A DNA stretch of 64,000 bases from NCBI RefSeq assembly GCF_035594765.1, contig NC_085846.1, positions 27,515,190 through 27,579,189 on the forward strand. The letters run 5' to 3'. The first letter of the stretch is position 1. Each line of letters opens with the position of its first letter. Of the stretch, positions 18,301-56,916 are shown one piece after another. Under the pieces are notes generated by a model. It was not told where the DNA came from and did not search any database. It was given only the letters and a program-made list of their open reading frames with translations. A program made the position numbers and the translations under genes. This stretch comes from Anolis carolinensis (taxonomy: Eukaryota).

Positions 18301-19403
18301 CCCCAAAATTTAGAATGCTGTTGACTTTTAAAAGCCACATGCACCCTTAGGCAAGGTCACCACCTTGGCGATGGACATTTGCCACAATTTTGTACCTAGA
18401 CTTGTTTCAGGTCCAGGAAAGTTTAGTTCTTGCTTTGAGACATGTCCTGTGTTGGGTCAACAACAACTTTTGGCACTTAGAAAAGCATCATCATCAACTG
18501 CAGACTACTTTAGCATCTTAAACTCAGTTTAAAGCAATTGAAGAAAGCTGAGAACAAAGTGGGGATTTGAGGAGGTAATAGAAACCGAGATATTTTAAAA
18601 TAGCTGGAGAAGTAGGACAATCAGGAATTGGGATTGTTTTTACCAATTTTGGACAGTTTTCAGAATAAATTCTCACAGAGCTACTGCCACTTCCTATTTT
18701 TGATGTGAGCCTTTTCAGGTTAAGTTTAACTTGGACAAGGTTAAAAACTACTGGTCTCACAGTAGGGAACATAAATTAAGGAGACTAGAAAGATCCTAAA
18801 CTCATATTTCCCTGGATGCCCCATATGTTACATCATCTTAAATGTAACACAGACCTAAAAGTGGCTTGTCCTACGTAGTGGACATAATGTGAACTACAAT
18901 AGTATTTCTAAGCAGTCTATTAAAATACGAAAGGGTAATAATCCTTTGACGTAGCCACTTACTTACACATTACCCGAAAAAGAGGAAGAAAGAGTGCTGA
19001 GATTTGCACAATATTGGGATATGCTACCATATACATAGAATTAATTCCTACCATGTAAAATTGTAAAGAAAAAAATTACCTCTCTGTAGCAAGGAAGGTT
19101 GATTAGGGGTGCATCTACACTGTAGCATTAATGCAATTTGATACCACTTTATCTGCCATGGTTCAGTGCAATGGAATCATGGAAGTTATAGTTTTACAAG
19201 CTCTACCAAAGCATGCTAGTGCATCACTAAACTTTAACTCCCATGATTCCATAGCATTGAGCCATGGCTGTTAAACTGGTGTCAAACTACATTAACTTTA
19301 CTGTGTATGCACCTGATTTATCTGTTATCCAGGTGCTTCCTGTGGATGGGCAGCTTCAGTTACCTGCACTCCCTCCTTTTGATTTTATTTCTCCTTAAAG
19401 AGG

Positions 19404-19503
19404 GCTTTGGCTGGCTAGTGTTTAAAACAGAGGGTACCTCCAGGAAGACAATAGCTTTGGCTGGCTAGTGTTTAAAACAGAGGGTACCTCCAGGAAGACA
19501 ATA
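19404..19503. repeat. Perfect 50-bp tandem duplication
   Basis: gctttggctggctagtgtttaaaacagagggtacctccaggaagacaata x2. Confidence 0.95.
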
Positions 19504-20861
19504 AAGCAGGATGTGTTATCTTGAAGGTTGTCCATCTTGAATAATTTCTTAACTACTTCCATAGTTGGTGCCTTGGCATTGGCAAGAGGTGCATGCATGC
19601 ACACACAGAAACACATGCATACACTTCCTCTTATAGACATGCTTCTCTGTTTGCTTACAAACAGATTAAAAGTAAGAGCATGACGACGCCTTGAGCAAAT
19701 ACCTTCTGAGGCTCTGATAGAAGCCGCTTCAACCCAAGTCAGAAGTTGGCTTTGGACCAAGAAACCTCACGGTGATTTCTGAGATAAGACTTACCTCACT
19801 CCTGTGGCAAGGTCAAGTATTGCGGCCTATCACAAAGAGCATCGAAAAGTCTGTGGGTTTGGTTATTTGAAACTACAATTCCCAGAATCTCTCAGCTATC
19901 TGGAAGAGAAAAAAAGAATCACAATTTCTTTGCTCTGGACTCATAGTCAACTCTGGTACTGGCACAGTTATACTGCCAGTCAATCTAGATTTTTAAAATC
20001 ATGTCAGAAGCGACTTGAGAACACACTGAAAGTCGTTTCTTGTGAGAGAGAATTGTCCTTCTACCGAGACATTGCCCAGGGGATGCCTGGATGTGTTACT
20101 ATCCTGCTGGGAGACCTCTCAAGTCCCTGCAAGCTAGAACTGACAGACGGGAGCTCATCCTGTCTTGTCTCGCAGATTCGAACTGCCAACCTTCAGGTCA
20201 GCAACCCAACCGTCAAGGCAGCAGTTCAGCTGGCACAAGGGTTTAACCCATTGCTTCACTGCTTCTTAATCCAGAAATAGGGTTTAGGGACACACTCTCC
20301 TGTCAGTAGGAATGTCAATATGTACTTTCCAAAACAAAATATTTGTATTGGGGTTGGGAATATTGGGCTTCATGTTATTGTTTTGTAAAATTAAAACTGT
20401 CATGTGGACAATTTTAATGTGTTTCCCCTTCACCAGCTACAATAGAAGTGAAGTTGTGCTATGGGTATTGAAAGTAGTCATCTAAGATCTACTTGAAGGA
20501 CTACTTTCAACAATAATTGTGTGAATGTGTAGCCCCATAATCTTGGGCAGTTGCCTGTTCTGACTGATGAATTTCAAGTTTTCATGCACCAAAATTGTAA
20601 GGTTGTTCAGCTGACTTGTGTACAGTTTCTCAGTAATAACTCACTAGCGTGACCACATATTCTTACTTGGCCACATGTATGTTAGTTTTCCTCTGTGACA
20701 TGTTGGAAAGTATGAAATTGGGTTTGGGAATGGTAAGCATGAAATTCAGAATCTAGACCCACTAGATGAAGAGGAAAGAGTGAATCCAATTCATAAGATG
20801 CTAGCAATAACAGATTTGGTCTTCCTTCTCTCCAGGGCTGACAAGTCCTTCTCTGTTCACC

Positions 20862-21185
20862 ATGGCAGAAAACAATTATAGCTGGTGGAAGTTGACTTTT
20901 CTCCGGAAGAAGAAATCCACTCCCAAGGTGCTGTATGAAAGCCCTGACATCTATCCTGTTGCTAATAATGAAAACCAACAAGAAGGGATGCGAGCAGATG
21001 GTGGCAGCGACGCAAACAGTCAGCAGGAATTCAATGCCCGGCTGGAGAAGATTGTGGACAAAAGCACCAAAGGCAAACACGTCAAGGTCTCCAATTCCGG
21101 GCGCTTCAAGGAAAAGAAGAAAGTCAGGGCCACGTTGTCGGAAAACCCCAACTTTTTTGCTGGCAATGACCGGGATGAGAAATGA
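20862..21185 (+). CDS. PRR15L: Proline-rich protein 15-like (ATAD4), 107 aa, single coding exon
   Basis: [19 protein letters not shown]...[36 protein letters not shown] signature; good Kozak context (cACCATGG); acceptor cttccttctctccag ends at 20835; synteny with PNPO and SP2. Confidence 0.96.
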
Positions 21186-24100
21186 TGGGCGAATGAAGGA
21201 GGTGCCCATTCATTACCCTTGGTGGTTATTTGGAGACGCTTCTCTGACCCTGAGAAGCCGACTGTGAATCAATTCCATTACATTTGCAAATGAAGTTAAC
21301 GAGAGGCCTGTCTGGGGCTCCAGGATTAGGTCCCGATTTTCACATGAAGAGTGGAGGTTCAGAGGGAAATGAACTTTATTATTGTTATTGTTCTTTACTT
21401 TTTTTAATTTAAGGAATAAAAAGAATATTTACATGAAATGCAAACCTGCTGCATAGTTAGCAGTGGAAAAATGAAAAGCGGAATGCGTGAGAGGACATTT
21501 GCAGAACTGCTTCATATTAACCCTGCCAGACCAGACAAGGTCACTCATCTTGGGTCGCAAATGCTGGGAAGTGGCACCAAGAGGGAGAAGGTGGTGTGCC
21601 ATTGAGCCACCTTTGTCCTACCTCTCCTATAAAATATTTTAATAAAGGTAGGCTATTAGTGCAACAGAAAGCTGGACTGAGACTATTTGCCACCTGAAGC
21701 AGAGCAGTGAGTGAAATGATCTCCCTTCCCTGCACCCCAAGTCAAATCAAGTTCCATAGTTCCAAAGCCAACCAAACCCATAGCCTCTGCCTGTCCCTAT
21801 TTGGCACAAATGGTGTCAATTAATCCTCTTTCACCACACTTTTTCAGATTATTTAAAAATGCTCATTTTTGCCTCCTCCTGCTCACATTTCTCCCCTTTG
21901 CCCGCAGCTTATTTCAATTGCTACAAACTGAGTCCAAAGTGAAAAACAAAACAATTTCCACTCAACTAATTCATCAGGATGAGAGGAGCAGGTGGAATCT
22001 AACATTTCCCTATAAGCTCTGAAAAAATTACGCAGCCTTTCCTAGCTTGTGTATTCTTCCTCATTTATAATATTTGCTATTTTGACCATACTCTGATCTG
22101 CTCGACAACAAGTGTCTTGGTTTTCATCTGCTAAATGTTGGAGGTCATGGATGATTAGATTCAGAGATTAACAGGGGTGTATATGGACTACATATTGTGT
22201 AACTAGCTACAAAGCAATCCATAACATCTGTATAATGCGCCCCGTATAACTCCGTTTATTATGATTACAACCAAGTTTGACTACAAAACTGGTTCTTTTG
22301 TTCCCTTCATTTGGGAAATTATATGCCTCTTGCCTTCCTTGGCCCCCTCAAAGGCTTTCATAAAGGGAATCAGGGTGTTGCTTGGAACAGGGCAGTAGAA
22401 TCAGGACCGAGATATTTTGCCATTTGAGGTGGAGCACTAAATGACATCCCCACTGCCCAATTCAAGGTCCATAGTTTCCAGAGCAAGTCATTTTGGCACA
22501 TGAGGATGAAGTACTCAAGTATTGGGGAGAAGTACAAGTACTTCTCCCCAATCCTGGCAATAAAAATACAATATGATAATAAGCAATACAGATAGGCAAC
22601 AATTTGATACCCTTTCATGACATCCATAATCTGCCTATTGGTGGGGTTGACTCATAAGTAACAACCCCGATGCTTTCCCTTAGGGTGGGATTTGTTCATG
22701 CTAGCCAAAATTGCTGTACTTCAGAGATGAGAAATTGTTTGTCTCTAGCGCAAATTGAACATTAAACCTCAAGGAGGAAGGATTTTCTCTGCCATGTGCC
22801 AGGGCTCACTAGTTTTGAATCTTCAGGGACCTCTTATTCTTAATACTGCATATTTTTGTGACACAGAGGATAGGATTAATTTTTTGGACAAGGACAGGAG
22901 TTTTGGTGGCAGGTAGATGTCCCTTCTATGTCCCTTCTAAGGAGAGCTAGACTAAAGTGAGACTGGGGATATATAGCCATCTTCTGGACTACAACTCCCA
23001 TTAAGTATCACCAATGACTCTATTGGCCAGGACTAATGGGAGTTGCACTTCAAAAGCGTCTGGAAGGTCATGCATTCTCCAAGCCTGGACTAGAGGATAT
23101 TTTGAGTCTGCATTTCTGGTTAAATCCTATTGAAATATATGAGCAGAAGGATTTTCAACTCTGTCCTGAGGTGCATGCCTAAAGCTTCACCCAAACTTGT
23201 GGCAAACTTTTGTATTAGTCCTGACTCTCATCTGTTAAAATGTAGGAAAGATCTGATAAAGCTGCTGTTTGTTTCACACACTGAATTCAAGGTTGTCCTT
23301 TTCTCACATTCAGTTCAGTCACCTCCAAGCCAATTCCAGCCAACTCAGCCTGGCAAGCCAAGTGAACTTTCACTGCAAAGAATTGTATTAATAACTCAAC
23401 CATGTGCTTGTAAAAAAGCTGCAGTTTTGCTGTACTTTGCACTCCTGTTTTCCTAAGCCTTGTAGCTATTTACATTTCTAATGTCCCAACTGTTGTTCCA
23501 TATGGTCCAGTTACCAAAAGGAAGGAAAAAACAAAAACAAAACATAAATAGCCAGTGTGGTGTAATGCTTTGAGGGTTGGGCCAGAACTCTGGTGACCTG
23601 GGTTTGAATCCGCACTTGACCATGGCTACTCATTGGGTGACCTTGGGCAAGTCACACTCTCAGAGGAAGGTAAAGGCAATGACAAACCTCTTCTCAACAA
23701 ATATTTCCACAAAAACCCTGTGATGGACGCTTCTTAGGGTCATCATGAGTCAGAAACAACTTAAAGTCGCATAACAATGTATGTGTGCATATGAATATGT
23801 GTGTCTATGGATATGATTGCTCACCTCACCAGATGAATTATTGCAGTCTTAAGGGTTTACTGCCATCCTGACTAGATCTTAGAAAAAATATTTTGGATTA
23901 CACTGCCAACTCCCTTGCTGGATTTGAGATTCTGGGAATTGTGCTCCAACATCCCCTCCTTTCCTAAGCTCTCTTCATGGTCACAACTGACTCTTGCCCA
24001 ACAAGGGCCAAAAACCTGCGGCTTTCCTGATGTTGATAAATTCTGCTACACCAGAATGAATGTGTGAGAAACCGCATGTCACTTCTGGTGTGAGAGAATT

Positions 24101-25159
24101 GGCCAACTGCAAGGACGTTGCCCAGGGGACTCCTGGATGTTTGATGTTTTACCATCCAGTGGGAGGTTTCTCTCATGTCCCCGCACAGGGAGCTAGAGCT
24201 GACAGACAGGAGCTCACCCTGCTCCCCAGATTCAAACTTCCTACCTTTGGGTCAGCAGAACTGCCAGCACAAGGGTTTAACCCACTGCGCCACCAGAGGC
24301 TCAATAATGCATGACTGATGATCAAGGATGATGGGAGTTGAAATCTAAGAATATGTATAAGCCTCGCTCCACAGCCCTTTCTAGATTTGAGACAGAAAAA
24401 AATGAACAGCCTGATTGATAGGTTTGTCCCCACCCTTCCCCAGTTTAGCAAGGTTGCTGGGCTTTCTCCTGCCTGCTGCAAAACATTAAAAAGAATCATT
24501 ACTGTATACTGGAAGTCCCAAGGCTGGTTCATCCAGTGTAAATTTTTTCTGCAACTAGGTGTGGGGTGTCTCAAATTAGATCAAAGTCACAGAGGGAAGG
24601 GATGTATAATTCTGATCCCTGTAGAAGGGATGCAATCCAATGCCTTCAGGCCAGAGAGAGAAAAACTTACAGAAACAATATAGAGGCATGTATGATTGGG
24701 GTTATGGTGCCGAGGAAAGGGGATTGGCTCCCCTGCTGCTGTGTCATAGCCTTATCCAAATTGGAATTTGCTATAGATCCATTTTGAGGAAGAAAATTAT
24801 GTGAGAAGCAGATCTTAGCAAAGTTCTCCCACTAAAACATCTGGTTTTCTCTTAAATGGCACATACAACAGAGAAAGATCTCCAATTCATTGTACTTCCA
24901 ATACTTGCAACAAAGGTCTATTGATAACCCAACCATTCTGATGAGATGTATATAGATTAGGTGGTATAGATGAAACATAATTACATTTCTGTCTGTCAAC
25001 AACAATACAGTACAGATACATTTCTTTCTGTGTATATTTTAAATTAAGACTTCCTCCATACCCCTCCCAGTTGTGACTTTGACTATATATATATATTAAA
25101 GTGCTCTTACTGTATGGACAAAAAGTGTAATTCAAGTCAGAGTAATAAACTTTAACTAC

Positions 25160-38819: not shown

Positions 38820-39590
38820 AACACAAATGCTACGATCTGCTAAGGACAAGAGGAATCCTCTCATCTCTGCAGGAGTCTACCATATACCATACAGCTGTGG
38901 ACAAGTCTACATAGGGACCACCAAATGCAGTGTTGCCAAAACATGAATCAAGGAACATGAAAGTCACTGCAGACTAACTCAACCAGAGAAGTCAGCCATA
39001 ACAGAGCACCTGATGAACCAACCTGGACATAGCATATTATTTGAGAACACAGAAATGCTGGACTGCTCCAACAACCACCATGTCAGATTACACAGAGAAG
39101 CCACTGAAATCCACAAGCATATGGACAATTTCAACAGAAAGGAGGAAAACATGAAAATGAACAAAATCTGGCTACCAGTATTAAAAACTTTAAAATCAGG
39201 ACAGTAAATAAAGAGCAACTTTGATAAAATAGTGGGATTCCAGACAAGAAACAATCAGGGCCAGCCAACACCTCCCAACAAAGGATTTCCCCAGACAGGA
39301 AGCAGCCAGGCTTTGAAACTGCATTCAATGTTAATCAAGGTGGCAACATTTACACTTTTCTCAAACAGACGAGAATTCTTTCTCCCACCCTGGATATTAG
39401 TCCACAGATATAGATAGATAGATAGATAAACCTCACTTGCCTAGTTTCCAACAGACCTCCCAACGTCTGAGCATGCCTGCCACAGATGTGGGCGAAACGT
39501 CAGGAGAGAATGCTTTTGGAACATGGCCATACAGCCCGGAAAACTCACAACAACCCTGTGATTCCGGCCATGAAAGCCTTTGACAACACT
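38820..39590 (+). mobile_element. Penelope-like element 3' part (GIY-YIG endonuclease remnant plus pLTR) in PNPO intron 1
   Basis: GVYHIPYSCGQVYIGTT (GIY-YIG), KSAITEHLMNQPGHSILFENT; pLTR the same as other copies. Confidence 0.9.
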
Positions 39591-39713
39591 CTGTACATGC
39601 TCGGGAACTCTATTGATAGCTACTGTATAAATTGTAATTATTCGGCCTTTACTTCATGCTAAGCCCCTGCAATGGAGAAAAGGGATTCTGGGTCCTAATC
39701 CCTACTCGCTCAC

Positions 39714-39848
39714 CTCGTCGTCTCCCCTGTAATTCTTCCGAAAGGGACCCAGATCCATCGCATAAGAATACTTTCCAACTTGGCCTGAACTATGAAGGCC
39801 GACGGGAGCCAAAATTCCGAGCCCGAAACGCCTCCCGCAAGCCAACAT
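39714..39848 (-). CDS. PNPO: PNPO exon 1; the seven exons total 780 nt = 259 aa
   Basis: MLACGRRFGLGILAPVGLHSSGQVGKYSYAMDLGPFRKNYRGDDE then gtgagc donor; MDLGP.RK.YRGD as in vertebrate PNPO. Confidence 0.92.
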
Positions 39849-39849
39849 T

Positions 39850-40185
39850 CAGCTCACCTTCTATCCATTTAATGCGCATGCGTAGACAACATAGAGCGAG
39901 TCAAAGTCCGTCCCGCCTTTTCGTTCTCTCTCCGGTCGATTACAAAACAGCAGGAAGATGACAGGAACCAATCCAAAGCAAGGGAATGGTCTTCTATCCC
40001 GCCCTCTTTCACGTTCTAGCAAATCAAGAGGAAGACGGAGATACACCAATCAGAAGGAAAAATTGGGCCTTCCTCTAGCCAATAGAAAGCGACATCCCCA
40101 AATCAATCCGAAAAAGAACCTCAACTTGGGGAAACGGCGGGGTCCAAGGGGCGTGTCCTAAGGGGAGTGGGCGGAGCTTGGTGTA
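39850..40185. promoter_or_regulatory. PNPO CpG-island promoter, probably bidirectional
   Basis: NRF1-like TGCGCATGCGTA (~39873), CCAAT boxes at ~39968, ~40046 and ~40079, GC boxes GGGGCGTGTC and GTGGGCGGAGC (~40148-40178), no TATA box. Confidence 0.8.
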
Positions 40186-41266
40186 TTTTTAAAAATTACA
40201 TGGATAGACCAGTTTTCCACTTTCTATTTTTTTTCTACTTAAATGTTAATTATTACAAATTGCTGCTAATCAATAAAATCCCACTTATGCATGATTAGAA
40301 TATTTAGTATTCGGAAAAATTAATTGCAGGTTGGGTATCCTTTATCCAAAATACACAGGACCACAGTTCGACAGGTTTTTTTTTTTTTTTGCTTTGGATT
40401 TTGCAATATTGGCATAAATGTACATCCCAAAATCCAAAATGTTGAAAGGCTGGCTGTTATAGCGCTACTATTCCACTTTTAACTGCCATGACAACATTCT
40501 ATGGAATTCTGAGGCCCAAGAGCTCTCTGGCAGAGAATTCTCAATGCCCTTCCCTAAACTGCGTGCATACCCTAGGATTGTATATAATGTTGCCATGGCC
40601 ATTACAGCGGAATAATAGCACTATAACAGTGCAGTGTGACAGGGCCCCGGGAAGAAGACATTAATAGAATGATCTTTCATAGACTCAGGTCTCCACCATG
40701 AGTTTACCAAAAGCTACAAACATCTTTTTCTCAGACTCCGTCTATACTGTAGAATTAATGTAGTTTGACACCACTTTAATTGCCATGGCTCAATGCTATG
40801 GAATCCTGGGATTTATAGCCTGGCGAGGCACCAGCCATCTTTGGCAGAAATTGCTAAAGACCCTGTAAAACTACAACTCCCACAATTCCATTGCATTGAG
40901 CCACAGCAGCTAAAGCAGTTTTAAAGCCCCCTTTTTATCTCATAGGAACAACTGTGCCTCTAATCTAATGTTCATATTTTTATTGTTAATTTTGTGTTTT
41001 ATATTGATTGGATGTTATTGTTATTCCATTTTTATTGTATTGCATTTTATTGTATTATGTTGTAAGCTGCCCCGAGTCCCTTGGGGAGATGGGCAGGATA
41101 TAAATGAAATATCTTATTATTGTTATTAAACTGCATCAGTTCTACAGAGCAGATGCATCCAAAGTGAATGGGAACCTGAAGCTGGGCCTTTTGTACAATG
41201 ATAAGGAAGCTGTGACGCTCTTTTCTATGAAGACTTTTTCTTGGATCCTTCTTTGCTGGCTTTTAG

Positions 41267-41328
<62 letters not shown>
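41267..41328. repeat. (AAT)n(TAT)n self-complementary microsatellite
   Basis: ~10 AAT units directly followed by ~10 TAT/ATT units. Confidence 0.95.
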
Positions 41329-41329
<1 letters not shown>

Positions 41330-41929
41330 TTATTTTTATACCCCGCCTCTATCTCCCCAAAGGGGACTTAGATGACAAGCAAAGGGGCTTTTGGGTCTCC
41401 TTCATGGACCCCTTTACATGGTTCTGATTAAACTGATTTGGATGACTAGTCTTTATAAATAAAACATTAACAAATCCATGCCTCTGGTCATAACTATATT
41501 TTGGGTGAACTCCTAAGTGTTCCCAATGATGCACAAACTTGTAATTTTTCTAAGGTGCAAGGAGGTGCCAAAAATGCCCAACAACTCATAGTTTGATTTT
41601 TTTTCCTATTAGTACTATGGAGATATCACAATGACACTTAACTATGGCATTGCATCTATTTTGGGTTTGCATTGAATCCTGAAATACATTATCACAAGTG
41701 CCATTTAATGAGCCTCTGACATTATGTAGGTATTCCTTACATCATTTTGTCTGGACCACAAATGAATGCTGCAAAAAAACCCATAAACTAAGAATGCCCA
41801 TGGATGAGCCAGGTTGCTAAGGTAACAGTGACATATCCTGCATTGTGACACTTCCACTTACATGTTCACCTGCCATATAGCTGAGGTCCTCTCTGATAGT
41901 AAGTCTTCAATGCCTTTTCTTCTTCCAAG

Positions 41930-42026
41930 GTGTTCACATTCTCCACAAGGACGATACTATGGTTCTGGCTTAATTTTCTATAAGTACGGGAGGAAGTGGG
42001 TTTATTCTATGAGGACTAAATCAAGG
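41930..42026 (+). other. Candidate 5'UTR exon of the novel gene
   Basis: Acceptor ccttttcttcttccaag, donor AGG|gtgagg. Confidence 0.4.
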
Positions 42027-42632
42027 GTGAGGACACTGTGGCTTTCTTTACCTCCATATCTCACTTGCACGCACACATATTTAATATATAATATTGATTC
42101 TAGGCACACACTACCACCAAGTGAAAAAAAGCTTTATTTATAAAAATGCCTGTGATTCTAAGACACATCCCGTTTTTTTGAGATGTTTATATGGGAAAAA
42201 GGAAATCTTATAATAGATGACATACAGTATACACGTGCACACAAGCCCTTCTATGCATTTTATGAGGTCTTTCAGCATTGCATCATTCATATTAGTCCAT
42301 CCATCTATTTAGCTATCCATTCAATGCAATGCTGGGAGAACTTCACAAAATGCATAAAGGTGACTGCAGTGACTTAAATCTCCAAAAAGGCAAAGCTCAT
42401 AAAAGTGTCATGCTTGAGAAGAACTGTTTGGGGGAAATGCAGAGAAGCCAATATTGACCTGACACAATTGCAAGCAATGTTCATTTCACAGAAATGTCAA
42501 GGACATGCTTAGAATCATGTCGTAGAATACACAGCAAGGTCTTATTGAACCTGATATTTATGCCTGAACTCACAGGATAAATGCTAGCTAGCAATTTGAT
42601 AAATTTGGAAAAAAAATACTTTCATTATCTAG

Positions 42633-42699
42633 GCCTTGCCTGGGTGACAATGAAGTCTTCTTGGAGAGCAAAAGAAAAGGAGTGAATGAAAGAGAGAAG
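42633..42699 (+). other. Candidate upstream exon of the novel gene
   Basis: Acceptor ctttcattatctag, perfect donor AAG|gtaagt, purine-rich body. Confidence 0.5.
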
Positions 42700-43900
42700 G
42701 TAAGTGAGAAAATAATTATTATAAGGAGGATTCTTAAAGATTTCCAAGTTTTAGTTCTATTCCTTTAACAGAGCAGGGTGGAGGGTGGGTCCTTTTCCCC
42801 AAGTAATGGTTCCCAGACTCATACGATGTGTTATGGCTGTGGGATGTTAGGATAAGGCACACACTGATCTTAGGGCAGATGTGTTGAAGGACAGGCAGGT
42901 GCCCCTGAGATAGCTTGCTGTCTTCCGGTACAGTGGCAGAAGCTCTCCCATTGCCAGTTTGGAAGTAAAATTCAACTCCATTCCAGCACCCTTCTATATT
43001 GCTATACTTCTGTTAACAAAGTCTCTGACAAAGATTCCTTCTTTCAAATGAAAAAACCAAGCAAGTCTTTTTACACCTTCCCAGCTTTCTCATTTCCTCC
43101 TCATTCTCTGTCTAACTGAATGATATTGAGCTGCATTAGCATTGGTATGATGGTGAAGGAGGGCAGGAGAAACACAGATTTTCATTGTTAGGTTGCAGTA
43201 GCATGTCTGCAGGAAAAGCTTCAGGGGAAAAGCTGATTTCTATTCTAGCTAATAGAATTTGGAATACTTGCATATACATTAGATATCTTGGGAGACAGGG
43301 ATTCAAATTTAAATATGAAACACATAAATATGAAACTACCATAGCCTGAAGGTAGTTTTATACAAAATGTTCCTAATAATTTTGTGCATGAAACAAAGTT
43401 TGTGTATGTTGAACCACCAGAAAGCAACCACGATCTCAGCCACTAGTGTGAAAGGTTTTGCAAATCAGAAATACTCAATTTGTACTTCGTTTTGAATGTG
43501 AAAACTTTGTCCTTGATCATATCAAGTAACAGTATCTCTGAGCATTGAGATAATGTCTCCCAGTAAAGAATAAGCTCAAATACAATTTTGGACTTTGCAG
43601 TATTTTGGATTTTGAAATTCTGGATAAGGGATACTCAGCCTGAACTATCCATACTCCACTTCTTACATTCTTTGCCATTCTGTTCTAGGCTAGAAAAGTT
43701 GCAGATCCATCCTTTGAAAAAGGAATGTCAACGTTGTTCAGAAGAACAGGGAAGTAGCAGTGACCCACCCAAAGGCTGGCAGTTTGCATTGCGTCCTTCC
43801 AGATATCGCAGACAACTATTTCTGAATCAGAGGACAAAGGGGCTTTCATTTCTGCTCAAACTATAAGAAGCTTTATGTGGAGAATGGGGAAAATGTGAAC

Positions 43901-44003
43901 ATGGCCTGGAGCTGTTGCAAAGAAAAGAAACCCCCAGAATTCAGCCCTAAGGTGGTGGAAGAACCAAAGTTTCCTTCCCATCCTAAGCCTCCTGTTATCC
44001 CAG
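43901..44003 (+). CDS. Novel/uncharacterised gene, coding exon A
   Basis: Strong Kozak AACATGG; MAWSCCKEKKPPEFSPKVVEEPKFPSHPKPPVIP; donor CAG|gtacaa, phase 1; in-frame upstream TGA at 43823. Confidence 0.7.
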
Positions 44004-44498
44004 GTACAAACATCTCCTTCCTTGCTGCTCCATCATGTCTCAGGTAGCATGATCATAGACAATGCTGTCTGGAGATTGAGAGTCTTTGTCTAAAAAAATA
44101 TTCAAAATAAAATCCTACCTGAGATATTATCTTGTGAGCTAAGATGTCTTTACGAAAGGGCATGTTGTTCAGCCTGCCTGGACCTTGAGATGATTATGAA
44201 GGCCCTTTTCTTGGTCCCACCATCTTGGGTATGTTTGGGCAAAGACACATCTTTTTTCTTCATGCAGAAAAAGATCATTTTATTCTAAAAGATACATATG
44301 TTCTTTGGTAGGGATTTTAACATGTAGTTTCAAGTTGTTTCTGATTTCTGCTGACCCTATCATGGGGTTTGTTAGGCAAGATTTATTAGGGGGAGGAGTT
44401 GCCCAAAGTCAGAGGTCTTTGCCTCTCTGTGGCCGTTGGGGCATTCAGTACCTACCAAAAGTGGTGACTTAACCCAGCAAATAATTCATTTTTGGCAG

Positions 44499-44654
44499 TT
44501 GCCTACGTATTGAAACATGAAGAAGATGAGGATGAGTATGAACCGGAAAATAAATCACCCCCAATCAAACCCCCGGTCAAGGAAAAGCCCCCGATCCAGG
44601 TTCAGGTTCAAGTCCAGGTCCAGGAGGTGAAGCAGCAACAAATAGAACCATCGG
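44499..44654 (+). CDS. Novel gene, coding exon B (alternative in-frame donor after 44660)
   Basis: Acceptor ttcatttttggcag; VAYVLKHEEDEDEYEPENKSPPIKPPVKEKPPIQVQVQVQVQEVKQQQIEPS; 156 nt, phase 1-1. Confidence 0.75.
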
Positions 44655-45194
44655 GTGAAGGTTCGTGGACAGAAAAAAAATTACTGACTTTAAATGGCTA
44701 TACAGTATAATTTACTCAATTTCACCAGATAGATTTAAAGTGATAACCCCATCTATCAGTGTACATAATTCTTTTTGAATAAGATACATGACTAGAGCAA
44801 GTTGTTCAATCCTAGTTTCCTGCTCCTCACTGGTCAGGGATTTTTGTGTAGCTTGGCATGCTGAAAAACCCAAGTTCAATCTCCGGGGTGGCAATTGATA
44901 GGAAAAACCTATCCCTATCCATGACCTTGGAGAGCTGCTGCCAGCCTGAATAAACAATACTGGGTAAGACAGTTTGCCTCCATATAAAGCAGCATCCTGT
45001 GCTCAGATCTGAAGAGAAGTTACATCGGCAACTGCTTCACTCCCAACTTGCAATAAGCAAATGCTTAATCCTGTTAGTGAGTTAGTAGCAAGGTCCCAAA
45101 ACTCTCTGCTAATACACATGAGAAATTTCTACAAGGCAAAGAGATTACCTATGTTGTTGACTCAACTTCCCTTTTTGTACTCCCCATTTGGAAG

Positions 45195-45347
45195 ATGACG
45201 ATCTCCAAAAGCCCTCCACCTCAGAGGAAAAGGACACCAGAGAAACACAAACCAATCCACATCATTTCCCGAAATCACCAGGAAGGGTCACACTGGATGA
45301 GATCCTGCATGGGATGCAAAGGATCCAGTTTATTATGGATAACACAG
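45195..45347 (+). CDS. Novel gene, coding exon C
   Basis: Pyrimidine tract plus AAG acceptor; DDDLQKPSTSEEKDTRETQTNPHHFPKSPGRVTLDEILHGMQRIQFIMDNT; donor CAG|gtatgt; 153 nt, phase 1-1. Confidence 0.75.
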
Positions 45348-45574
45348 GTATGTGAAAAGGTCTTCCCATTTTTTTTATCAAATGGCAGAAGCCTAAAATC
45401 CAAGAGTTAATTTGTTTTGTACTGTGGAATGGATTGGTGAACTAAAGCCTTCTTCCTGTACCTGTACATATAGACATACTTTCTACATCTGTTTGTTCAT
45501 ATCCAGATAGTACATTATTCACGTCAAAATATTGCCCACAAAAAAACAAAAAGTTGGCCAGATCTATCCTAGAA

Positions 45575-45960
45575 TAACGTGCCTGATTCTGATCACCATA
45601 TTTAAGGACATTAACAAGCTGAAATTTGTCTAAAAGGCAATTAACGTGAGGTCTGGAAACCAATCCTTATGAGAAATAGTGGATGAACCTCAGAAAAGTC
45701 ATTTATAGTATGTAAGTGACAGAGACCATGAAGAAGAACCAAACTAATGAATTCAAATGACTAAATTAAAGAACTTCCTGAGTTCCAGCAGTGACTATCT
45801 TCATTAGAAGATTTCAAAGAGAGGTTTAGTTGATTAACTTTTAGGGTGCTTTAGGAGGGGATTCCTATTCACTAGATAGTTCTTGGGTTCAAATCTATGC
45901 CTCTATGGGTTGGACTGGATGGCCCGCGAGGTGTCTTCCAACTCTATGATTCTGATTCTA
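45575..45960 (+). mobile_element. Old CR1 fragment plus CR1 tail in intron 3 of the novel gene
   Basis: Degenerate match to the CR1 3' region; tail CCAACTCTATGATTCTGATTCTA. Confidence 0.7.
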
Positions 45961-46817
45961 TAGGTCGATTTTGAAGCCCCTGGCAGCACAATAGGTTAAA
46001 CCACTGAGCTGCAGAATTTGCTGACCAAAAGGTTGGCGGTTTGAATCCAGGGAGCAGGGTGAGTTCCTGCAGTTTGCCCCAGCTTCTGCCAACTTAGCAG
46101 TTTGAAAACATGCAAACGTGAGTAGATCAATAGGTACTGCTCTGGCAGGAAGGTAACAACGCTTCATGTAGTCATGCCAGCCACATGACGTTGGAGGCAT
46201 CTATGGACAATGCCGGCTCTTCAGTTTAGAAATAAAAATGAACACCAACCCCTATAGTCGGACATGACTAGACTTAATGTCAGGGGAAAACCTTTACCTT
46301 TACTATAGGTCTTTTTAAAGAGACTTATGGAATATTTATTAATGGCATACAGTTTCATGAACTATAATCTGTTTCATAAGATCCATAACACTTTATGGAT
46401 AAGTTAGGATAAGGCGACAGGCACAAAATATGCTGTCTTTATAGCAGCAATTGATGGGAACTTTAGCATGAAACTACCAAATTAGTTTATCAGAAATTTT
46501 AGTTCTGTGATGTGCACAGAGACCATTTTTTCTCACTTCATGTGTTACCAGCACTGCTTTGTTCATGATCACTGTAGTGATTTCTCCATATAGACATTTA
46601 CTTATCAGCTTGTACATTTTGCATTACATACCTTCTGTGACCTTGCTCTTCGCCACTGTCAGCTCCACACTGCCATGTGTATATGTGTCTGTCAACTAGG
46701 AACATATTTTTCATATTACATATGAAACAGAAAAGTGCATGAATCCCACGTCTGATAATTGTTATAATAATCATTGCCCTCTACATTTGACTCAAAACAA
46801 TGTGCTTTTCCTTGCAG

Positions 46818-46942
46818 TGACTGATTTTGAACAACGTATCTCCCGCTTGGAGCGGATAGTTTTAAAAATGAGGAATGCGTGGATTCACCACAGAACTTGC
46901 CATCTTGAGGGTCTGGAATATGATGATGAACATGAAGATTAA
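46818..46942 (+). CDS. Novel gene, coding exon D (stop TAA); candidate poly(A) signal ATTAAA at 47152
   Basis: Acceptor gcttttccttgcag; VTDFEQRISRLERIVLKMRNAWIHHRTCHLEGLEYDDEHED*. Confidence 0.75.
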
Positions 46943-48321
46943 TTTTTAAAATGGCTTTCATAATGTTTGATTTTTTATACCTATATTAGCAATTTGTACA
47001 TCAGTACCCTCTTTTCTCCCAAAACAACCGTGAATCCAGTTTTTCAAAACTTTCTATTTATAACATTGCTACCTTCAGTTAAAGATATTTACTTTAGAAT
47101 TCTAATTATTTTTAACAATCTATGGCTAGCATGCCTTAATATTCTTCCATAATTAAAATATAGATGCATGAATATGCTCTCTGACTTTCAAAACTTGGAA
47201 GTTATTTTTGGACTGCATCTTCCAGCAGCCATGGCAACACTGCTGGGGAAGCTTTGGGAGTTATTGTCCAAAAAAACTTCCAAGATTTCCAACCAGGGGG
47301 TGGCATAGTACATGCCAAAATTTGGAGATAAATTGGTGCTGAGGGAGAATATACAAGCCAGCAGTACAGAAGTTGAGAAAGCAGAGCCACAACCAAGATA
47401 GGCAAAATGGACTGGATAGAGCTACAAAGAGCTCTTGAGGGGCAATAGAGGACAGCAAGGAACAAAGCAAAATGGCAATAATTTGGATTCCCACTTATGC
47501 ATAAATAATGGCAGATGCCGGAAGAAACTTTATAATGTCAAATAAGGTTGCTTTAGAGTTTTAACTCTCAGCACGTTGTGATGGAAACTCTAATCTAAAC
47601 AATCAAAATCACAGCAAATAGCATGCAATACTATAATCTTGGAAGACCTGCAGATGGGTCAGTGAACAAGAGATACAGTAGTTTTTTAGGATGGTAATTC
47701 TGCCACCTAAACCATACTCAGCCATCTAAACCAATAAACCAGCTAGTAAGGGCAGCTCAACTTGACAACAGCTTCCCAGGGTTTTCATACACTGTTACTT
47801 GGGATCCTTTTTAAAGAGTGTGGCCTTTGCACACATCACATCCAAACATTATTACACATGTAATGCTCCCACATTCCCAAGTTCTTCAGGTTTACCAGGT
47901 TTACTCACATGTATCTTCAGCTACAAGGTACTTAATCCTCCTTCCCTGCAAATGTTTATTATTTATTTATTTGCCCCATTTATACCCCACCCTGAAGGGG
48001 ACTCAAGGCAGTTGTTCAGTGTTCAGTGACCACAGCCCTTACCTCTTTACTCAGATGAAGAAACAATGAAATTCTATACACATTTATGGAGTTCAGTGAA
48101 ATTTCATCTTATGTGTGCATATGACTATAACCTAAGTCAGGTACGCACTGTAAGCCACCCAACGAGGAATTTATAATCCCATCCACTCTCATTATAACCA
48201 TCTTTCCTCTGAAAACTGGTCTGTGCAGTTATCAATAGTACAACCTGTTACTGAAGCTTGTTATGGATCTTATCATTCTTTTAAATAAGACAAATCTCAA
48301 ACAGGACTGTAACAACATGGG

Positions 48322-50729: not shown

Positions 50730-50830
50730 CTACAAGTTCTTGGTGACCAGATGGGTTTTATAGTGCTTCGTCAGATGATCACTTCTAATGAAGCGCTTTT
50801 GGCACTGAGCGCACTCAAAACGTTTGTCAC
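50730..50830 (-). CDS. SP2: SP2 last exon (zinc finger 3, stop TAG)
   Basis: [33 protein letters not shown]. Confidence 0.97.
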
Positions 50831-51373
50831 CTGCCCAGAGGAAGAAACAAGAGCAAAGGCTAAGAATGCAAAATAGGTCATGTCACACATACAGCAACTT
50901 GTGACATGCACAAGAGGTAGTGATAGATGCTTGCTTAGATGGTTTAACTCAGCCCTCCCCAAACTCGATATTTCAGCCATAACTCCTAACAGCACATTCA
51001 TGGGAAAACACTCACAATAAGATTCCCACAACCTGGCAGTAAATTCTCACAGCATATGGCAAAACAGTTTTGAAAACACAATGCTTGGTAATAGCTCTTG
51101 ATTTCATATATTATCATCCAAATCTGACACATGAGAGAATATAAAACTATGGAAGGAGATTTATGCCCCTTCATAACACAGTTTATGATAATAACCTTGT
51201 ATAATTGGGTAAAGAAACTGTATCTTCCCAAAGTCCTAACACTGCTAATGGTGAAGGGTTTGATGCTCTGCAGTCTTAAAACATCTACAGGCTGTGGCTA
51301 TTACCTCGCTTTACGAATTCAGAAAGACACATCTATAACTAACTTTCTTTCCAATTACAAAGAACCACTAAGG

Positions 51374-51508
51374 CAGTGGTTTTTAACCTGTGGGTCCCCA
51401 GGTGTTTTGACCTACAACTCCCAGAACTCCCAGCCAGTTTACCAGCTCTTAGGATTTCTGGGAGTTGAAGGACAAACCATCTGGAGACCCACAGGTTGAG
51501 AACCACAG
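51374..51508. mobile_element. hAT MITE
   Basis: TIR CAGTGGTTTTTAACCTGTGGG / CCCACAGGTTGAGAACCACAG; perfect 8-bp TSD cactaagg. Confidence 0.9.
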
Positions 51509-51852
51509 CACTAAGGGAAAATCAGCAAAATCCAAGGCTATGAAAAAAGAACAGGCTTAAGCAATGTGAGCTATTTGTGTCTCTCCAAATGCTTTTGGCT
51601 ATAACTCTACTATCACTAATCTTTTTTTTAAAAAAGGTTAAATAAAGCAGGCATGCAGTCACATAAAATTCACTTGGGACTCTGAAATATCTACAGGACA
51701 GCCAAACTAGAAGAGTATCACCTCAAAAAAAATAGAGCATTATTCCTGCTTTACATAGCATCTGAATGGCTGACTGTGATAATTAATATATGAGAAGCAC
51801 CTGAAGAATCTGTATTAGGCCCTTTTTTCTTACCCAATATTTTTGTACAGAC

Positions 51853-52046
51853 CTGTATGTGTCCGGGCATGCCGTTGCAGCTCATCACTGCGTGTGAACC
51901 GCTTCCCACAAAGGACCCAGTTGCACACAAAAGGGCGTTCTCCTGTGTGTAGGCGCACATGAGCCCGCAACAGAGAGGTCTTGCGGAAGGTCTTCCCACA
52001 TTCAGGAACGTGGCAGATATGCCTCTTCTTACCCTGGTCCCCCAAC
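51853..52046 (-). CDS. SP2: SP2 exon (zinc fingers 1-2)
   Basis: [64 protein letters not shown]; KTSLL is diagnostic of SP2. Confidence 0.98.
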
Positions 52047-52835
52047 CTGAAAGGAAAGGAAGATTTATTTAGCAGCACTGGTATAAGGAGAATGGCGAGG
52101 AGAGTTGAAGAAACACAGATTTTCAGTGTCCAGCTGTAGCAGCATGTCCACAGTAAACAATGCAGCAAATCTTGAGCTGGACAAGAATGAGATTCACCCC
52201 TAGGTGATTTTGTCATAACTGTGTGTGCCAGCTTACAACAGGTAAGGTAAATAGCAGCTGCTTCCAGATTCCCTTACAGAGCATGTAGGAACACCAAAAT
52301 AGAGAGAAAGGGGGTGAGAAGGTAGGACTGTTTCATTATCTTTTCCCCAACATGTTAAAAACACAAGTTGTATAGATTTGACCACCAAAATGGAAATCAT
52401 ATGAAGAGGATAGGCTGGTGAAAGAAAGTCATTGACAGACTCATTCTAGAAGAAGCCTTCTAGTTTCAAAATGCATTTGTGTATTGGTCCAGACCTCATG
52501 ATTTCATTTCACATGTGTACATTGTTAGCTCTGAATAGAAAATTACTGAAACAAGTTGAATTACTATTTTTGATGTGGTGTAGGAACCTACCACCCCATA
52601 TTTTTTTCACATTATTTCTGCCCCTAGTACTAATTTTTTTCTATTAAAAAAGTTATGCCCAGAAACTCAAAGACTTGGTTAACTGAGATATGTCTGCATT
52701 CTAGGGTTTCAGTCAAACAGTACTTCCATTTTGTTCAATACAGTTTCTATCTTCTCAAACAATGGCCCAGAGCAGTTATTTGTAGAGAACTTTTGGAGCT
52801 TTGGTGTCCCTTTCAGATTGAGTCTCAGTTCTCAC

Positions 52836-53010
52836 CTTTTCTCCCCATCCTTGCAATTGGGGCAGGTGCAAGCCATTCGCCGTCTCTTCTCTCCTGGCTG
52901 CAGTTCTCCCAAGAGTGCCTGCTCCATCTGTAATTGGATCTGAGTGGGGCTCAGGCCGCTGATAGTCAAGTTGTTGCCTGAGACATTTTGCACTGTCAGC
53001 TGCTGCTGGC
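52836..53010 (-). CDS. SP2: SP2 exon (buttonhead box)
   Basis: GQQQLTVQNVSGNNLTISGLSPTQIQLQMEQAL...RRMACTCPNCKDGEKR; 175 nt. Confidence 0.97.
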
Positions 53011-53829
53011 CTGTGGGGAGAGGGGCAATGAAGCTATGGCTCAGTACTAGTGTGTGACCAAATTTGCTTGAGTGCGTAGTTATTTCAAGAAGCCACCGAA
53101 CTTCCCCATGGATAGTCAAGTGAACATGCTAGCCAGGAATTTTGTACTTCCCTCACTTTTACTTTTCTCTGTTGCTTGTTAAGAGTCAGTGCTGTATATT
53201 CTTCAAAATACCTCGAGATCCAGCATGTCATTCTGGGAGGCACCTCATTTCCACCTGCATTTTCCCTGGTCTTAGTCTTGATTTAGAATTCTCCTCCACA
53301 GCACTCCTGTTTGGTCCCCTATTCCTCTGACACCTCTCTAATTCACAAAGATCCTTTTCAACTTCGAAATAATAAATGCTGTAGTAAATGGTTACATTCT
53401 TAAAAGGGCAAAGAATCTACAAGTAGTGTGGAAAAGGGATATCAAGCAGTAAGGTGTTCAATAATTCTGTCACTGCATTTGATTTCTATGTGTTCCATGT
53501 ACTAAAGGTTGCACAGAGCAACAGAGTTATAAATCCTTTTGAGCAATAATTAAAAGAATATGATATGTGGTTCAATGCATTTCTGAGTAATATGCTTATC
53601 ACTGATGCTTCCTGAAATATTTCTACAGGTTTTCTTCTTTCCTCCTATTGGTTTAGTCAACATAATTGCACTGTGCAGAACTGGAATTCTCTATCTTCCT
53701 AACCCAGATATAGGCAAACTTCGGCTCTCCAGGTGTTTTGGACTTCAACTCCCACAATTCCATTTTTTGTATACACGTGTATGTGATATATGAGAAAAAA
53801 CAACAACATACAATCTTCAAGATTCAACA

Positions 53830-54400
53830 AGTATTATTTCCTCAATCCTGCCACCTCTCCATTTCCACCTGTGAACCCATGACTTCCAACACCACAGCAT
53901 ATGGAACTAGTATCTAACAAAAAGCTGTCCTTGTCATTAAACTAATAAATCCCCATTCAGCTATTTCAAAATCTATTTTTGTCTTCTTTTTTAAGTACCC
54001 AAAGGCCAGTCTCCCATCTTCTAGCAAATTCTTCTTTGTTTCCTCCCCTTAAGCCATTGGGGAGCTTGGCCATTTGAATATACTCTATTACTTTGCTTCT
54101 CCGATCATTAGTAAGTAGTCCCCCCCCCTTTCCATGATTTTGCTATAATTCTCACTGCTACGTAACGATACTGGCAAATTCTTCTATCATCTTTGTCAAT
54201 TCTCTCCTGAAACAAACCCAATAAGTACATTTCTGGGTTTTTCTTAATCTTCTTAGTAATCATTTTGTTGGTTTCTTTAGCCACCTTTTTCTGAAACCCC
54301 TTTACCATCATACAGGTCCACCAAACATGGAAGAATGTGCCTTCCTGCGTTTTACATTTCCAACATTCCTCCCTTTGGGAGATATCAATTTTAACCATTA
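53830..54400 (-). mobile_element. L1/Tx1-clade LINE ORF2 C-terminal fragment
   Basis: CWKCKTQEGTFFHVWWTC zinc knuckle. Confidence 0.8.
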
Positions 54401-54656
54401 ATTTGGTGGGTTTGTATGGTGGTAAAAAGGTTTTGGAAAGGTTTACCAGCTGTTAGGAATTGTGGGGGTTGAAGTCCAAAACACCTGGAGGGTCAAGTTT
54501 GCCAATGCCAGCCCTAACTGCTATGCCATCGGCCTGTACTTTTTTTTTTTAAGTATTAGATATTCTCACATACCCCACCAAAATGCATTTCTGTATCAAA
54601 CATTCAGCAGGAGATACTGCTCACCACAATCAAGAACATTCCACAACACATCTCAC

Positions 54657-54972
54657 CTCCCGTGTTGGTGATAGTGACGGGAACGCCTTGAACCTGAACC
54701 CCATTGATGCTGATGGTCTGCATGGCCTGAGCAGCTGCGGCGAGTTGAGCAGCATTGAGGCTGATGATGCCCCCAGCAGGAGCGATCTTTGGCAGGGCAC
54801 GCTCTTTGCGAGCCCCTGTCTTTTTGGTACTGCCTCCTGTCTGGGAACTGCGAGGTGCAGGACTGCTGCAGGAGGTGGTGGAGGAAGCGATGGGGGAAGG
54901 GGCCACAGTAACGCCAGGGGCTTCTTGGAGCAGCACTGTTTGCAGCTCACCAGAAGGAGACTTGAAATATAC
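54657..54972 (-). CDS. SP2: SP2 exon
   Basis: VYFKSPSGELQTVLLQEAP...LPKIAPAGGIISLNAAQLAAAAQAMQTISINGVQVQGVPVTITNTG; 316 nt. Confidence 0.96.
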
Positions 54973-55950
54973 CTAGAAGTAGAGCACAAAAATATAAGGG
55001 GTGCAGTGTGCTACTTTCTGGCACATATATGTCATCTCTTTCAAGTAGAGGAACTGCTACCTAGTGAAAACCAAGTTCTCACTTGCCTCTCACTACATTC
55101 TGTATCACTTCCCTAAGAAGGATAATGAGTACATCCCATGAAAACCAGGTATGCACCTCCTTAAATTGTTCATTGTTCCCTTCATGATTCTGTATGCTTA
55201 ACATATCTGTCACCATGTCATGCTCAGAAATTTCATAAATGTATCTAACTTCGTTACAAGGCATAAGACATATCAAAAATATCATTTTTCTTGGCACCCT
55301 GATTGCAGTAAATAGTTGAAATAATATGTATACACTGACATTTTTTCTTTCATGACTGTTTCTAACTAGTCACCTTAAATGTAAAAAAGGGACTTAGAAA
55401 TTATATAAATAAGACAAACTGAAAAAGACTTAACTGAAATATTTTGGAATTTAAACCTGCTTTCATATCTACATTTAATATCAATCAATATATCATACTT
55501 CACAGATATTCAAAAACTATTAGAAATGTGGTTCCAGAAGACCTTTTATTTCCTGCTTTTAAGATTACTAAAGACAAATTGTGTTATAAATGAATACATA
55601 ATCAACAGATCCTTGACAGAAACACAGATCAAGAGGAAAGCTGTACAGAAAGATGAGAGATTGTGTGACTCCTTATTTGTGGAGGAGTATATCTCAAAGT
55701 GCAGCAGATTCCACTACAGAAAGCCATCTTTCCATATGGGTAAAAGAGTGATTCCCAAAAGATATTATTTATACATCCATATATGCAACTGACAAAATTC
55801 CAGCTCATTCCAGAATTCCAGGCAAACATGGCTTGTACTGGAACTCCTACATTTATTTACTGTCTTTCTGAGTCACCACATAAGTAAGCAACATACAATG
55901 TGAACACATACAAATAACCTGTAAACCATCACATCAAATCAAGACCATAC

Positions 55951-56916
55951 CTGAGTGGGGATGGGCTCAGATGTTTGGATCTGGAAGTTTTGTGGTGACT
56001 TCTGGGGAACAGTGGGGAGCGTGGCTGAGGCTGCCTGGACCACCCGCAGAGCTTGCTGGGGGATCTGAACGACCTGTTGTTCTTGCTTGGGTTGGACCAC
56101 TTGTACCTGTTGGACCACTGCTGGCTGGCCAGACCCAGGGCTCTGCACAATCAACAGGTTGTTCCCTGCCTGGATGATATTTTCAGCCGTGGTCTCTATC
56201 AAGACCGTTTCCACTTGCTCAGTCACAGCCATCGCAGCTGTCTGGGATGATGATACTGCCTTCTTCCGGGCCTTTTTGCTTGGTTTTGAGGGGCTGTCTG
56301 GGACAATCTGAGTCTGGCTGTTGGTGTCTCCGGCTGTGACCAGATTACTCACTGGCAAAGTAAGGGTGACGTTCCCACTGGTGCCAAACTTGACCACGTT
56401 GGTGGGGCTATGGACAGCGGAGGTCTTGTGAGCTGGTGCTGGTTTGATTGGCACAGGCTTATGAGCTGAAGAAGAGGAGGAGGATGACAATGAAGAAGAG
56501 GAGGAAGTAGGGATGGAACTTGGAATAATCTGTATTTGGTTACCCAGGTTCTGCTGTACTTGAATGGTCTGCCCTGATGTTGTTTGTATTTGTGGAACTG
56601 CCTGGTACTGGATGTTGGCAGGGGAGTGAGCCCCTTTGTTGATTACAGCTGGGTTTTGGATGGTAAACACCAACTGCCCCCCAGGATATGAGGTCCCGAG
56701 CTGAGAACCCTGGATCTGGAAGAGGTTTCCTTTCGAAGACAAGATCCCAATGCTGTTCTTGTTGGAACTTAGTGGAAGTGGAGCAGGCTTGATGGGGACC
56801 AGTTTTCGAGGGGCAGGCTGAGGAGGGGCAGGAGAAGCAACGGCTGTTTCAACAGCTGGAGGACCGATTTTGCTACATGTGGCAGCAAGGAGGGCGAGTG
56901 GAGATGGCTGAGAATC
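55951..56916 (-). CDS. SP2: SP2 large exon (Sp box plus Q-rich domain); upstream exons lie outside the window
   Basis: DSQPSPLALLAATCSKIG (Sp box)...QIPQQALRVVQAASATLPTVPQK; 966 nt with AG/GT boundaries. Confidence 0.97.

Follow-up and report, generated by a model that had tools for sequence, protein, structure and literature searches.

Our analysis of a 64,000-nucleotide stretch of the Anolis carolinensis genome (RefSeq assembly GCF_035594765.1, contig NC_085846.1, positions 27,515,190 to 27,579,189 of the forward strand; this whole stretch is called the window below, and positions are counted from its first nucleotide) shows that a genuine, strongly constrained protein-coding gene, LOC100551546, lies on the plus strand between PNPO and SP2. 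It is already annotated but uncharacterised. Our favoured overall reading, to which we give a probability of about 0.7, is that LOC100551546 is a coding gene of the PNPO-SP2 interval which is restricted to squamates as far as can be detected, and which has its own promoter, five exons and a protein product of adaptor type. A first-pass annotation of the window had called the gene novel; this does not hold, as its 180-amino acid (aa) product is identical to the RefSeq "uncharacterized protein LOC100551546" (XP_062840226/7; the former record, XP_016850100, was named "early nodulin-75-like"). No mention of LOC100551546 was found in a literature search.

Gene structure and coding constraint

The 23,042-bp locus that was fetched from assembly GCA_035594765.1 (CM069372.1) matches positions 33901-56942 of the window with no mismatches, and the 180-aa gene called there covers exactly 43901-46942. 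The protein maps back onto four coding exons on the plus strand, separated by three introns that are all in phase 1, so the first-pass view that this is a real, spliced protein-coding gene stands; work on the whole protein used the database 180-aa sequence mapped onto these exons. Exon 2 (43689-44003) follows an acceptor that is kept across species (TCTAG, with GCT(A/G)G as the first bases of the exon); it carries 5' untranslated region (UTR) and the start codon at 43901, and its coding part (43901-44003, from start codon to donor) encodes MAWSCCK and the residues that follow. Exon 3 (44499-44660) encodes VAYVLKHEEDEDE and then a variable, low-complexity linker, and exon 4 (45195-45347) encodes a disordered stretch, including a TQT motif, and then the start of a helix. 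Exon 5 (46818-47175, coding to 46942) encodes the remainder of the helix and the WIHHRTCHLEGLEYDDE tail, with the stop codon at 46940-46942, an ATTAAA at 47152 and a 3' end that is probably near 47175. No second copy of the gene was found in the window, and no known RNA family was found in the region 39000-48000.

Orthologues are present in Pogona, three Podarcis species, Zootoca, Liasis, Naja, Micrurus and Varanus. Their database names are often misleading ("histone H3.v1-like", "early nodulin-75-like", "golgin subfamily A member 6-like protein 22", "serine/threonine-protein kinase irlA"), because the low-complexity linker drives the matches on which such names are based. The Varanus entry (KAF7239614.1, "Chaperone protein DnaJ", 101 aa) is a truncated as well as misnamed model, whose missing N-terminal exons lie upstream of the annotated start (MSWSCCK at 6024-6122 and AYILRHEEDDDE at 9575-9628 of the Varanus locus).

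Nei-Gojobori counts were made on per-exon codon alignments of Anolis against five species of other genera (six genera in all). Exon 5 gave proportions of synonymous (pS) and nonsynonymous (pN) differences of 0.44 and 0.04, respectively, and a ratio of nonsynonymous to synonymous change (dN/dS) of about 0.06; the dN/dS values for exons 4 and 2 are 0.33 and about 0.2, and the exon 3 linker is saturated in the codon alignment. The C-terminal 40 residues are 82-97% identical among all sampled squamates. GT/AG sites are kept at the coding junctions that were read and intron phase is unchanged (the exon 3 donor lies outside this comparison, and the Varanus exon 4 acceptor was read a few bases off). 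Reading frame, start, stop and the splice sites read are kept, together with an excess of synonymous change, as a protein-coding gene should have them.

The exon 2 5' UTR, which has an in-frame stop at 43865 and an upstream ATG at 43725, is better conserved than the coding part of the same exon. This upstream ATG stands in an invariant context (43725-43757; AAGGAATG[C/T]CAA) and in Anolis opens a 10-codon upstream open reading frame that is out of frame with the main one; it could have a role in the control of translation.

A full-length product of 150 aa with the same architecture is on record from Micrurus surinamensis (UniProt A0A2D4PKT9). This entry probably comes from venom-gland transcriptomes; if so, it would be the one piece of spliced-mRNA evidence in this analysis. 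A Logan contig considered as a possible cDNA was set aside, as it proved to be unspliced sequence of genomic type that reads through exon 4 and is silent on the UTRs.

Anatomy and predicted function of the protein

Eight orthologue sequences were aligned, and the structure was predicted by AlphaFold2 with the same alignment. Among the 47 invariant columns are TQTNP and columns of the C-terminal helix. All orthologues whose N-terminus is complete begin with M(A/S)W(S/T)CCK (Cys5-Cys6-Lys), followed by VAY(I/V)xxHEEDDD and then by an acidic, Q/E/K-rich linker of variable length, which sets the overall length of the protein (150-229 aa among orthologues). After this, E-TQTNP is invariant, and its T106-Q107-T108 (an LC8-type anchor, encoded by 45245-45253 in exon 4) is present in all eight sequences amid otherwise variable, disordered sequence; the predicted local distance difference test (pLDDT) score of the TQT region is below 50-67. 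The TQT stands 13 residues before a 46-residue helix, residues 122-167, which is the only one predicted (pLDDT >90, the remainder of the protein being disordered) and in which 10 of the 14 a/d positions are hydrophobic in a single heptad register over all 46 residues. The C-terminus is nearly invariant, running from TLDEIL to DFEQRISRLERIVLKMRNAWIHHRTCHLEGLEYDDE, with a tail of the form W-x-H-H-x-x-C-H...LEYDDE.

Searches for relatives of known function gave nothing: single exons and the eight full-length proteins had no Pfam match beyond low-complexity noise, a profile search of the PDB gave only low-complexity matches from the Q/E-rich linker to the Shaker N-terminus, and an ESM Atlas feature search with exons 4 and 5 gave scores of at most 0.88 to unnamed clusters, with no lead among them. 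The dual palmitoylation motif of GAP-43 is MLCCMRR, and LOC100551546 likewise has two adjacent, conserved cysteines within its first 10 residues and beside a basic residue; by analogy, M-x-W-x-C-C-K may well tether the protein to membranes through S-palmitoylation in the manner of GAP-43, its acylation being predicted from the motif. The helix, long and with a hydrophobic a/d seam, is predicted to form a coiled coil. TQT is the canonical anchor of LC8, a hub protein that promotes dimerisation beside coiled coils (PMC6607443), and the TQT of LOC100551546 has the placement described there for LC8 partners, in a disordered region that extends for at least 5 residues N-terminal to the motif, from which we infer that it would bind an LC8/DYNLL dimer.

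Taken together, these features suggest that the product would be a small, membrane-tethered adaptor that is held by an N-terminal Cys-Cys lipid anchor and dimerises through its C-terminal helix, and that LC8 would clamp the adaptor or be recruited by it; the adaptor would perhaps act in RFX-controlled (ciliated or germ) cells.

The H-H-x-x-C-H cluster of the tail (residues 163-168, positions 46886-46903), which lies after Trp161 at the end of the helix, is near-invariant, Micrurus having N at its second His. It could be a metal site that is shared across a dimer.

The candidate promoter and first exon in the PNPO-SP2 neighbourhood

Upstream of exon 2 a non-coding block on the plus strand (41785-41907), a candidate for the promoter and a non-coding exon 1, aligns in six species, Pogona, Liasis, Podarcis, Naja and Varanus being 74-78% identical to Anolis, and the DNA that flanks it fails to align. 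Within it, positions 41813-41826 carry an X-box-like, RFX-type palindrome, GTTGCTAAGGTAAC, which was found as a match to the RFX X-box consensus GTNRCN-NN-RGYAAC; it is identical in five of the six species and has one base changed in Pogona. 14-bp X-boxes are described as marking the promoters of RFX targets (PMC3245922). Toward its 3' end the block has a splice donor on the plus strand (41890-41905; the exon would end at 41898 and is followed by GTAAGT) that reads GTA(A/G)GT in six of six species, and the spacing from X-box to donor is fixed at 86-87 nt in all of them. On the 5' side of the block the six-species comparison found no conserved AG or polypyrimidine tract. Because this donor pairs with the conserved acceptor at 43689, exon 1 is likely to be a short, non-coding exon that ends at 41898 and is spliced to that acceptor, and transcription probably starts at the gene's own compact X-box promoter rather than at the CpG promoter of PNPO, 2 kb off.

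That CpG-rich patch (39600-40200, CpG observed/expected up to 1.1) contains an NRF1-like site, GCGCATGCG (39874-39882), CCAAT boxes at 39968, 40046 and 40079, and a GC box, GGGCGG (40169-40174). The first-pass annotation had placed LOC100551546 downstream of this CCAAT/NRF1/GC-box promoter. The motifs are indeed there, but they stand 26-325 bp upstream of the ATG of PNPO itself, BLAST comparison with five other squamates gave no match beyond 39882 (only Pogona aligns even that far), and the candidate start of LOC100551546 lies in the block at 41785-41907, so its use of the patch as a promoter is not supported; most simply, the patch is PNPO's own promoter. The two genes are on opposite strands, and the sole conserved candidate for a first exon, placed by its conservation, has its X-box 1.97 kb from the PNPO ATG in Anolis (1.8-3.4 kb over the six species). 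In a bidirectional pair the genes lie on opposite strands and their start sites fall within about 1 kb of each other in one CpG island; a distance of 1.8-3.4 kb, as measured to the candidate X-box, would be more than is usually accepted for a shared bidirectional promoter.

In the DNA that separates the PNPO promoter from the conserved block there are a pair of inverted repeats resembling short interspersed elements (55-nt arms, 76% complementary) and a palindromic (AAT)n/(ATT)n microsatellite, at 40764-40925 and 41255-41346, which fits this intervening stretch being non-exonic filler.

The neighbours themselves are as the first-pass annotation had them. LOC100551546 is head-to-head with PNPO, whose coding exon 1 (39714-39848, minus strand, ATG at 39848) has an open reading frame that translates as MLACG...MDLGPFRKNYRGDDE and is followed by a GTGAG donor; the PNPO gene called in the GCA_035594765.1 locus has the PNPOx Pfam domains. 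It is tail-to-tail with SP2 (called as a 625-aa, zf-C2H2 protein), whose coding exons within the window span 50730-56742 on the minus strand, with the end of the coding sequence near 50730, a zinc-finger open reading frame at 51830-52216 and a Q-rich one at 55939-56742. The order PNPO(-)/LOC100551546(+)/SP2(-) is common to Anolis, Pogona, Liasis and Naja. The PNPO(-)/LOC100551546(+) part is also found in Podarcis lilfordi and Varanus, with a BEN-domain gene called ahead of the point where SP2 would come. This gene is on the plus strand just downstream of LOC100551546 (Podarcis lilfordi locus 19405-24704, 491 aa; Varanus komodoensis locus 15521-21841, 593 aa) and may be a lineage-specific insertion or a gene derived from a transposon.

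On the other side of PNPO, as expected, a single-exon, 107-aa open reading frame resembling PRR15L is present at 20862-21185 on the plus strand. PRR15L and LOC100551546 are both short, largely disordered proteins of the same locus and have superficially similar peptides (RLEKIV and RLERIV), but PRR15L has a single coding exon and the resemblance falls short of significance (hhalign probability 2.3%, BLASTP E value 0.25). An origin of LOC100551546 by duplication of this neighbour was therefore rejected.

Distribution, origin and comparison with known systems

An exhaustive HMMER search of 1.84 billion representatives with exon 4, which is less conserved than exon 5, found three related clusters that are all squamate (Varanus, Podarcis and Liasis), plus one spurious repeat protein. 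Word-indexed searches, which cover proteins of about 100-315 aa only, were made with the whole Podarcis protein and with residues 101-180 of the Anolis protein, and found only Anolis, Pogona, Podarcis, Zootoca, Liasis, Naja and Varanus; cluster look-ups added two further Podarcis species and Micrurus. A word search with exon 4 alone gave no candidates, its length window shutting out full-length relatives. The exon 4 HMMER and word-indexed searches, which between them drew on two very large protein collections, matched nothing from geckos, skinks, the tuatara, turtles, birds, crocodilians, mammals, amphibians or fish.

Such a distribution, limited to Iguania, Lacertoidea, Anguimorpha and Serpentes, would fit a birth of the gene on the squamate stem, whether de novo from intergenic or intronic DNA of the PNPO-SP2 interval or through capture of a small fragment, with fixation under strong constraint afterwards. 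The lack of any Pfam or PDB relative, of significant PRR15L similarity and of a second copy within the window points the same way, and a short, mostly disordered protein with one helix is typical of young genes. On the other hand, absence elsewhere is weakly established, since annotation is patchy even in snakes and the genomes of geckos, skinks and the tuatara lie outside the sample; exon 5, the most conserved one, was covered by the length-limited searches only; and the fully formed candidate promoter, the five exons and the near-invariant motifs, seen in all sampled lineages, set no more than a minimum age for the gene, that of the common ancestor of these lineages. We put forward birth in the squamate stem lineage as a tentative account, at somewhat less than an even chance. 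It bears on a further idea in the first-pass annotation, of a squamate open reading frame that arose de novo on an old divergent transcript: an innovation within squamates fits the distribution, the old divergent PNPO transcript is unsupported, and de novo origin is one possibility beside fast divergence.

Fast divergence is the basis of a second account, in which LOC100551546 is an old vertebrate gene, without any link to the mammalian transcript discussed below, that only seems specific to squamates because it diverges too fast outside the helix or has been missed by annotation. The linker does evolve very fast and the protein does vary in length from 150 to 229 aa, the low complexity does mislead RefSeq naming (as in the histone, nodulin and golgin names above), and the truncated Varanus model shows how easily such a gene is missed. 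Yet the C-terminal 40 residues are highly conserved across the sampled squamates, as noted above, and a similarly constrained orthologue of 99-315 aa in any annotated bird, turtle, frog or fish should share words with residues 101-180, which none did. An old and overlooked gene therefore seems unlikely to us, and an origin in the squamate lineage is favoured over it.

The first-pass annotation had also suggested that the long non-coding RNA (lncRNA) SP2-AS1 of mammals descends from this gene. On this proposal the gene was present in the amniote ancestor, divergent from a CpG promoter that it shared with PNPO, and SP2-AS1 is its non-coding remnant, of the Xist/Lnx3 type. The argument was from geometry: human SP2-AS1, which we take to start just upstream of PNPO and to run antisense to SP2, would have the arrangement of the Anolis gene. 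Divergent lncRNAs are very common at CpG promoters, so a match of position alone is weak. The strand arrangement is confirmed and is old within squamates, human SP2-AS1 does lie in the same neighbourhood as PNPO, SP2, PRR15L and CDK5RAP3 (PMC8814662), and lncRNAs that are fossils of coding genes do exist (PMC5577775). Nevertheless, the relatives found by exon 4 HMMER and by the word-indexed searches with a whole protein and the C-terminal 80 residues are squamate only, whereas a fossil should have coding relatives in lineages beside or before the mammals. The candidate promoter and exon 1 keep their 1.8-3.4 kb distance from the PNPO ATG in all six species, the patch next to PNPO has no match beyond 39882, and the argument from geometry is weakened because the likely start falls in a conserved element of its own, some 2 kb away from the PNPO promoter. 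Finally, a systematic survey of lncRNAs derived from coding genes that were lost used the anole as a reference species, and neither its text nor four supplementary files mention SP2, SP2-AS1 or PNPO (PMC5577775). The descent of SP2-AS1 from this gene is thus unsupported and leans towards refuted by two conditions that the first-pass annotation itself had set, a start site away from the PNPO promoter and absence in outgroups, as judged from the likely start site and the protein searches, though it falls short of being disproved; we give it only a very slim chance. Slimmer still, in our estimate, is its most specific form, in which SP2-AS1 is the decayed remnant of this LC8-motif, coiled-coil gene, which would have been present between PNPO and SP2 in the amniote ancestor and have survived in squamates alone, being lost or changed beyond recognition elsewhere.

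Several points weigh against our favoured reading, a squamate-restricted adaptor gene with its own promoter and five exons. "Squamate-restricted" is a statement about annotated proteins or proteins called from open reading frames, and absence from other groups is weak evidence because even most annotated snakes have no LOC100551546 entry, which is a sign of how patchy the annotation is. Transcript-type contigs have no record of a full-length 180-aa Anolis product, which may point to low or narrow expression. RefSeq has two Anolis transcripts for one and the same protein, and these may differ in their 5' exons; an extra upstream exon at the PNPO promoter is also possible. The start site, exon 1 and its junction with exon 2 are argued from conservation, as is the function of the X-box. 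The degenerate X-box pattern is expected to match by chance 0.5 times per window, and a second match, GTTACATCGGCAAC, does occur within intron 3 at 45019-45032, 160 bp upstream of exon 4; the same pattern did not recover it in the loci of the other species. Lastly, many TQT peptides fail to bind LC8 (PMC6607443).

If the observed distribution holds, LOC100551546 is taxon-restricted and dates back at least to the common ancestor of iguanians, snakes, anguimorphs and lacertids, which lived about 170-190 million years ago according to published time trees, and it sits as an insertion in a gene neighbourhood next to the HOXB cluster that is among the most conserved in vertebrates. Its predicted grammar of lipid anchor, LC8 motif, coiled coil and X-box promoter is testable, and would make it a tractable case of a lineage-specific adaptor that joined an ancient hub (LC8/dynein, and possibly cilia); CRISPR (clustered regularly interspaced short palindromic repeats) methods are feasible in Anolis. 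The present analysis also corrects the misleading database names and the truncated Varanus model.

Four known systems can be compared with LOC100551546. With the lncRNA fossils (Xist/Lnx3; Hezroni et al. 2017, PMC5577775) only relative position is in common, a place on the plus strand between PNPO and SP2, where humans have SP2-AS1; the protein searches gave no coding relative outside squamates and the locus is unmentioned in that study. For the lncRNA question, a common position next to a CpG promoter is insufficient to infer descent. Genes under RFX/X-box control are ciliary and germ-cell genes (PMC3245922, PMC5024701), and the likeness to them is a 14-bp palindromic site in a conserved, promoter-like block directly upstream of a conserved first-exon donor; the LOC100551546 site differs in that its central dinucleotide is AA, where AT is the commonest, and both site and start are candidates placed from the sequence. 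Like small proteins with dual palmitoylation at the N-terminus, the LOC100551546 orthologues have a conserved Cys5-Cys6 and then Lys, although the remainder of the protein has no homology to them and the lipidation is predicted. The LC8/DYNLL partners (dynein intermediate chain, Swallow, myosin Va; PMC6607443) complete the comparison. The LOC100551546 product has no homology to a known partner, is tiny (150-229 aa) and has an N-terminal Cys-Cys, and its binding to LC8 is predicted, but it resembles these partners in having a TQT in disordered sequence, with E or G at position -2, before a long predicted helix with heptad periodicity.

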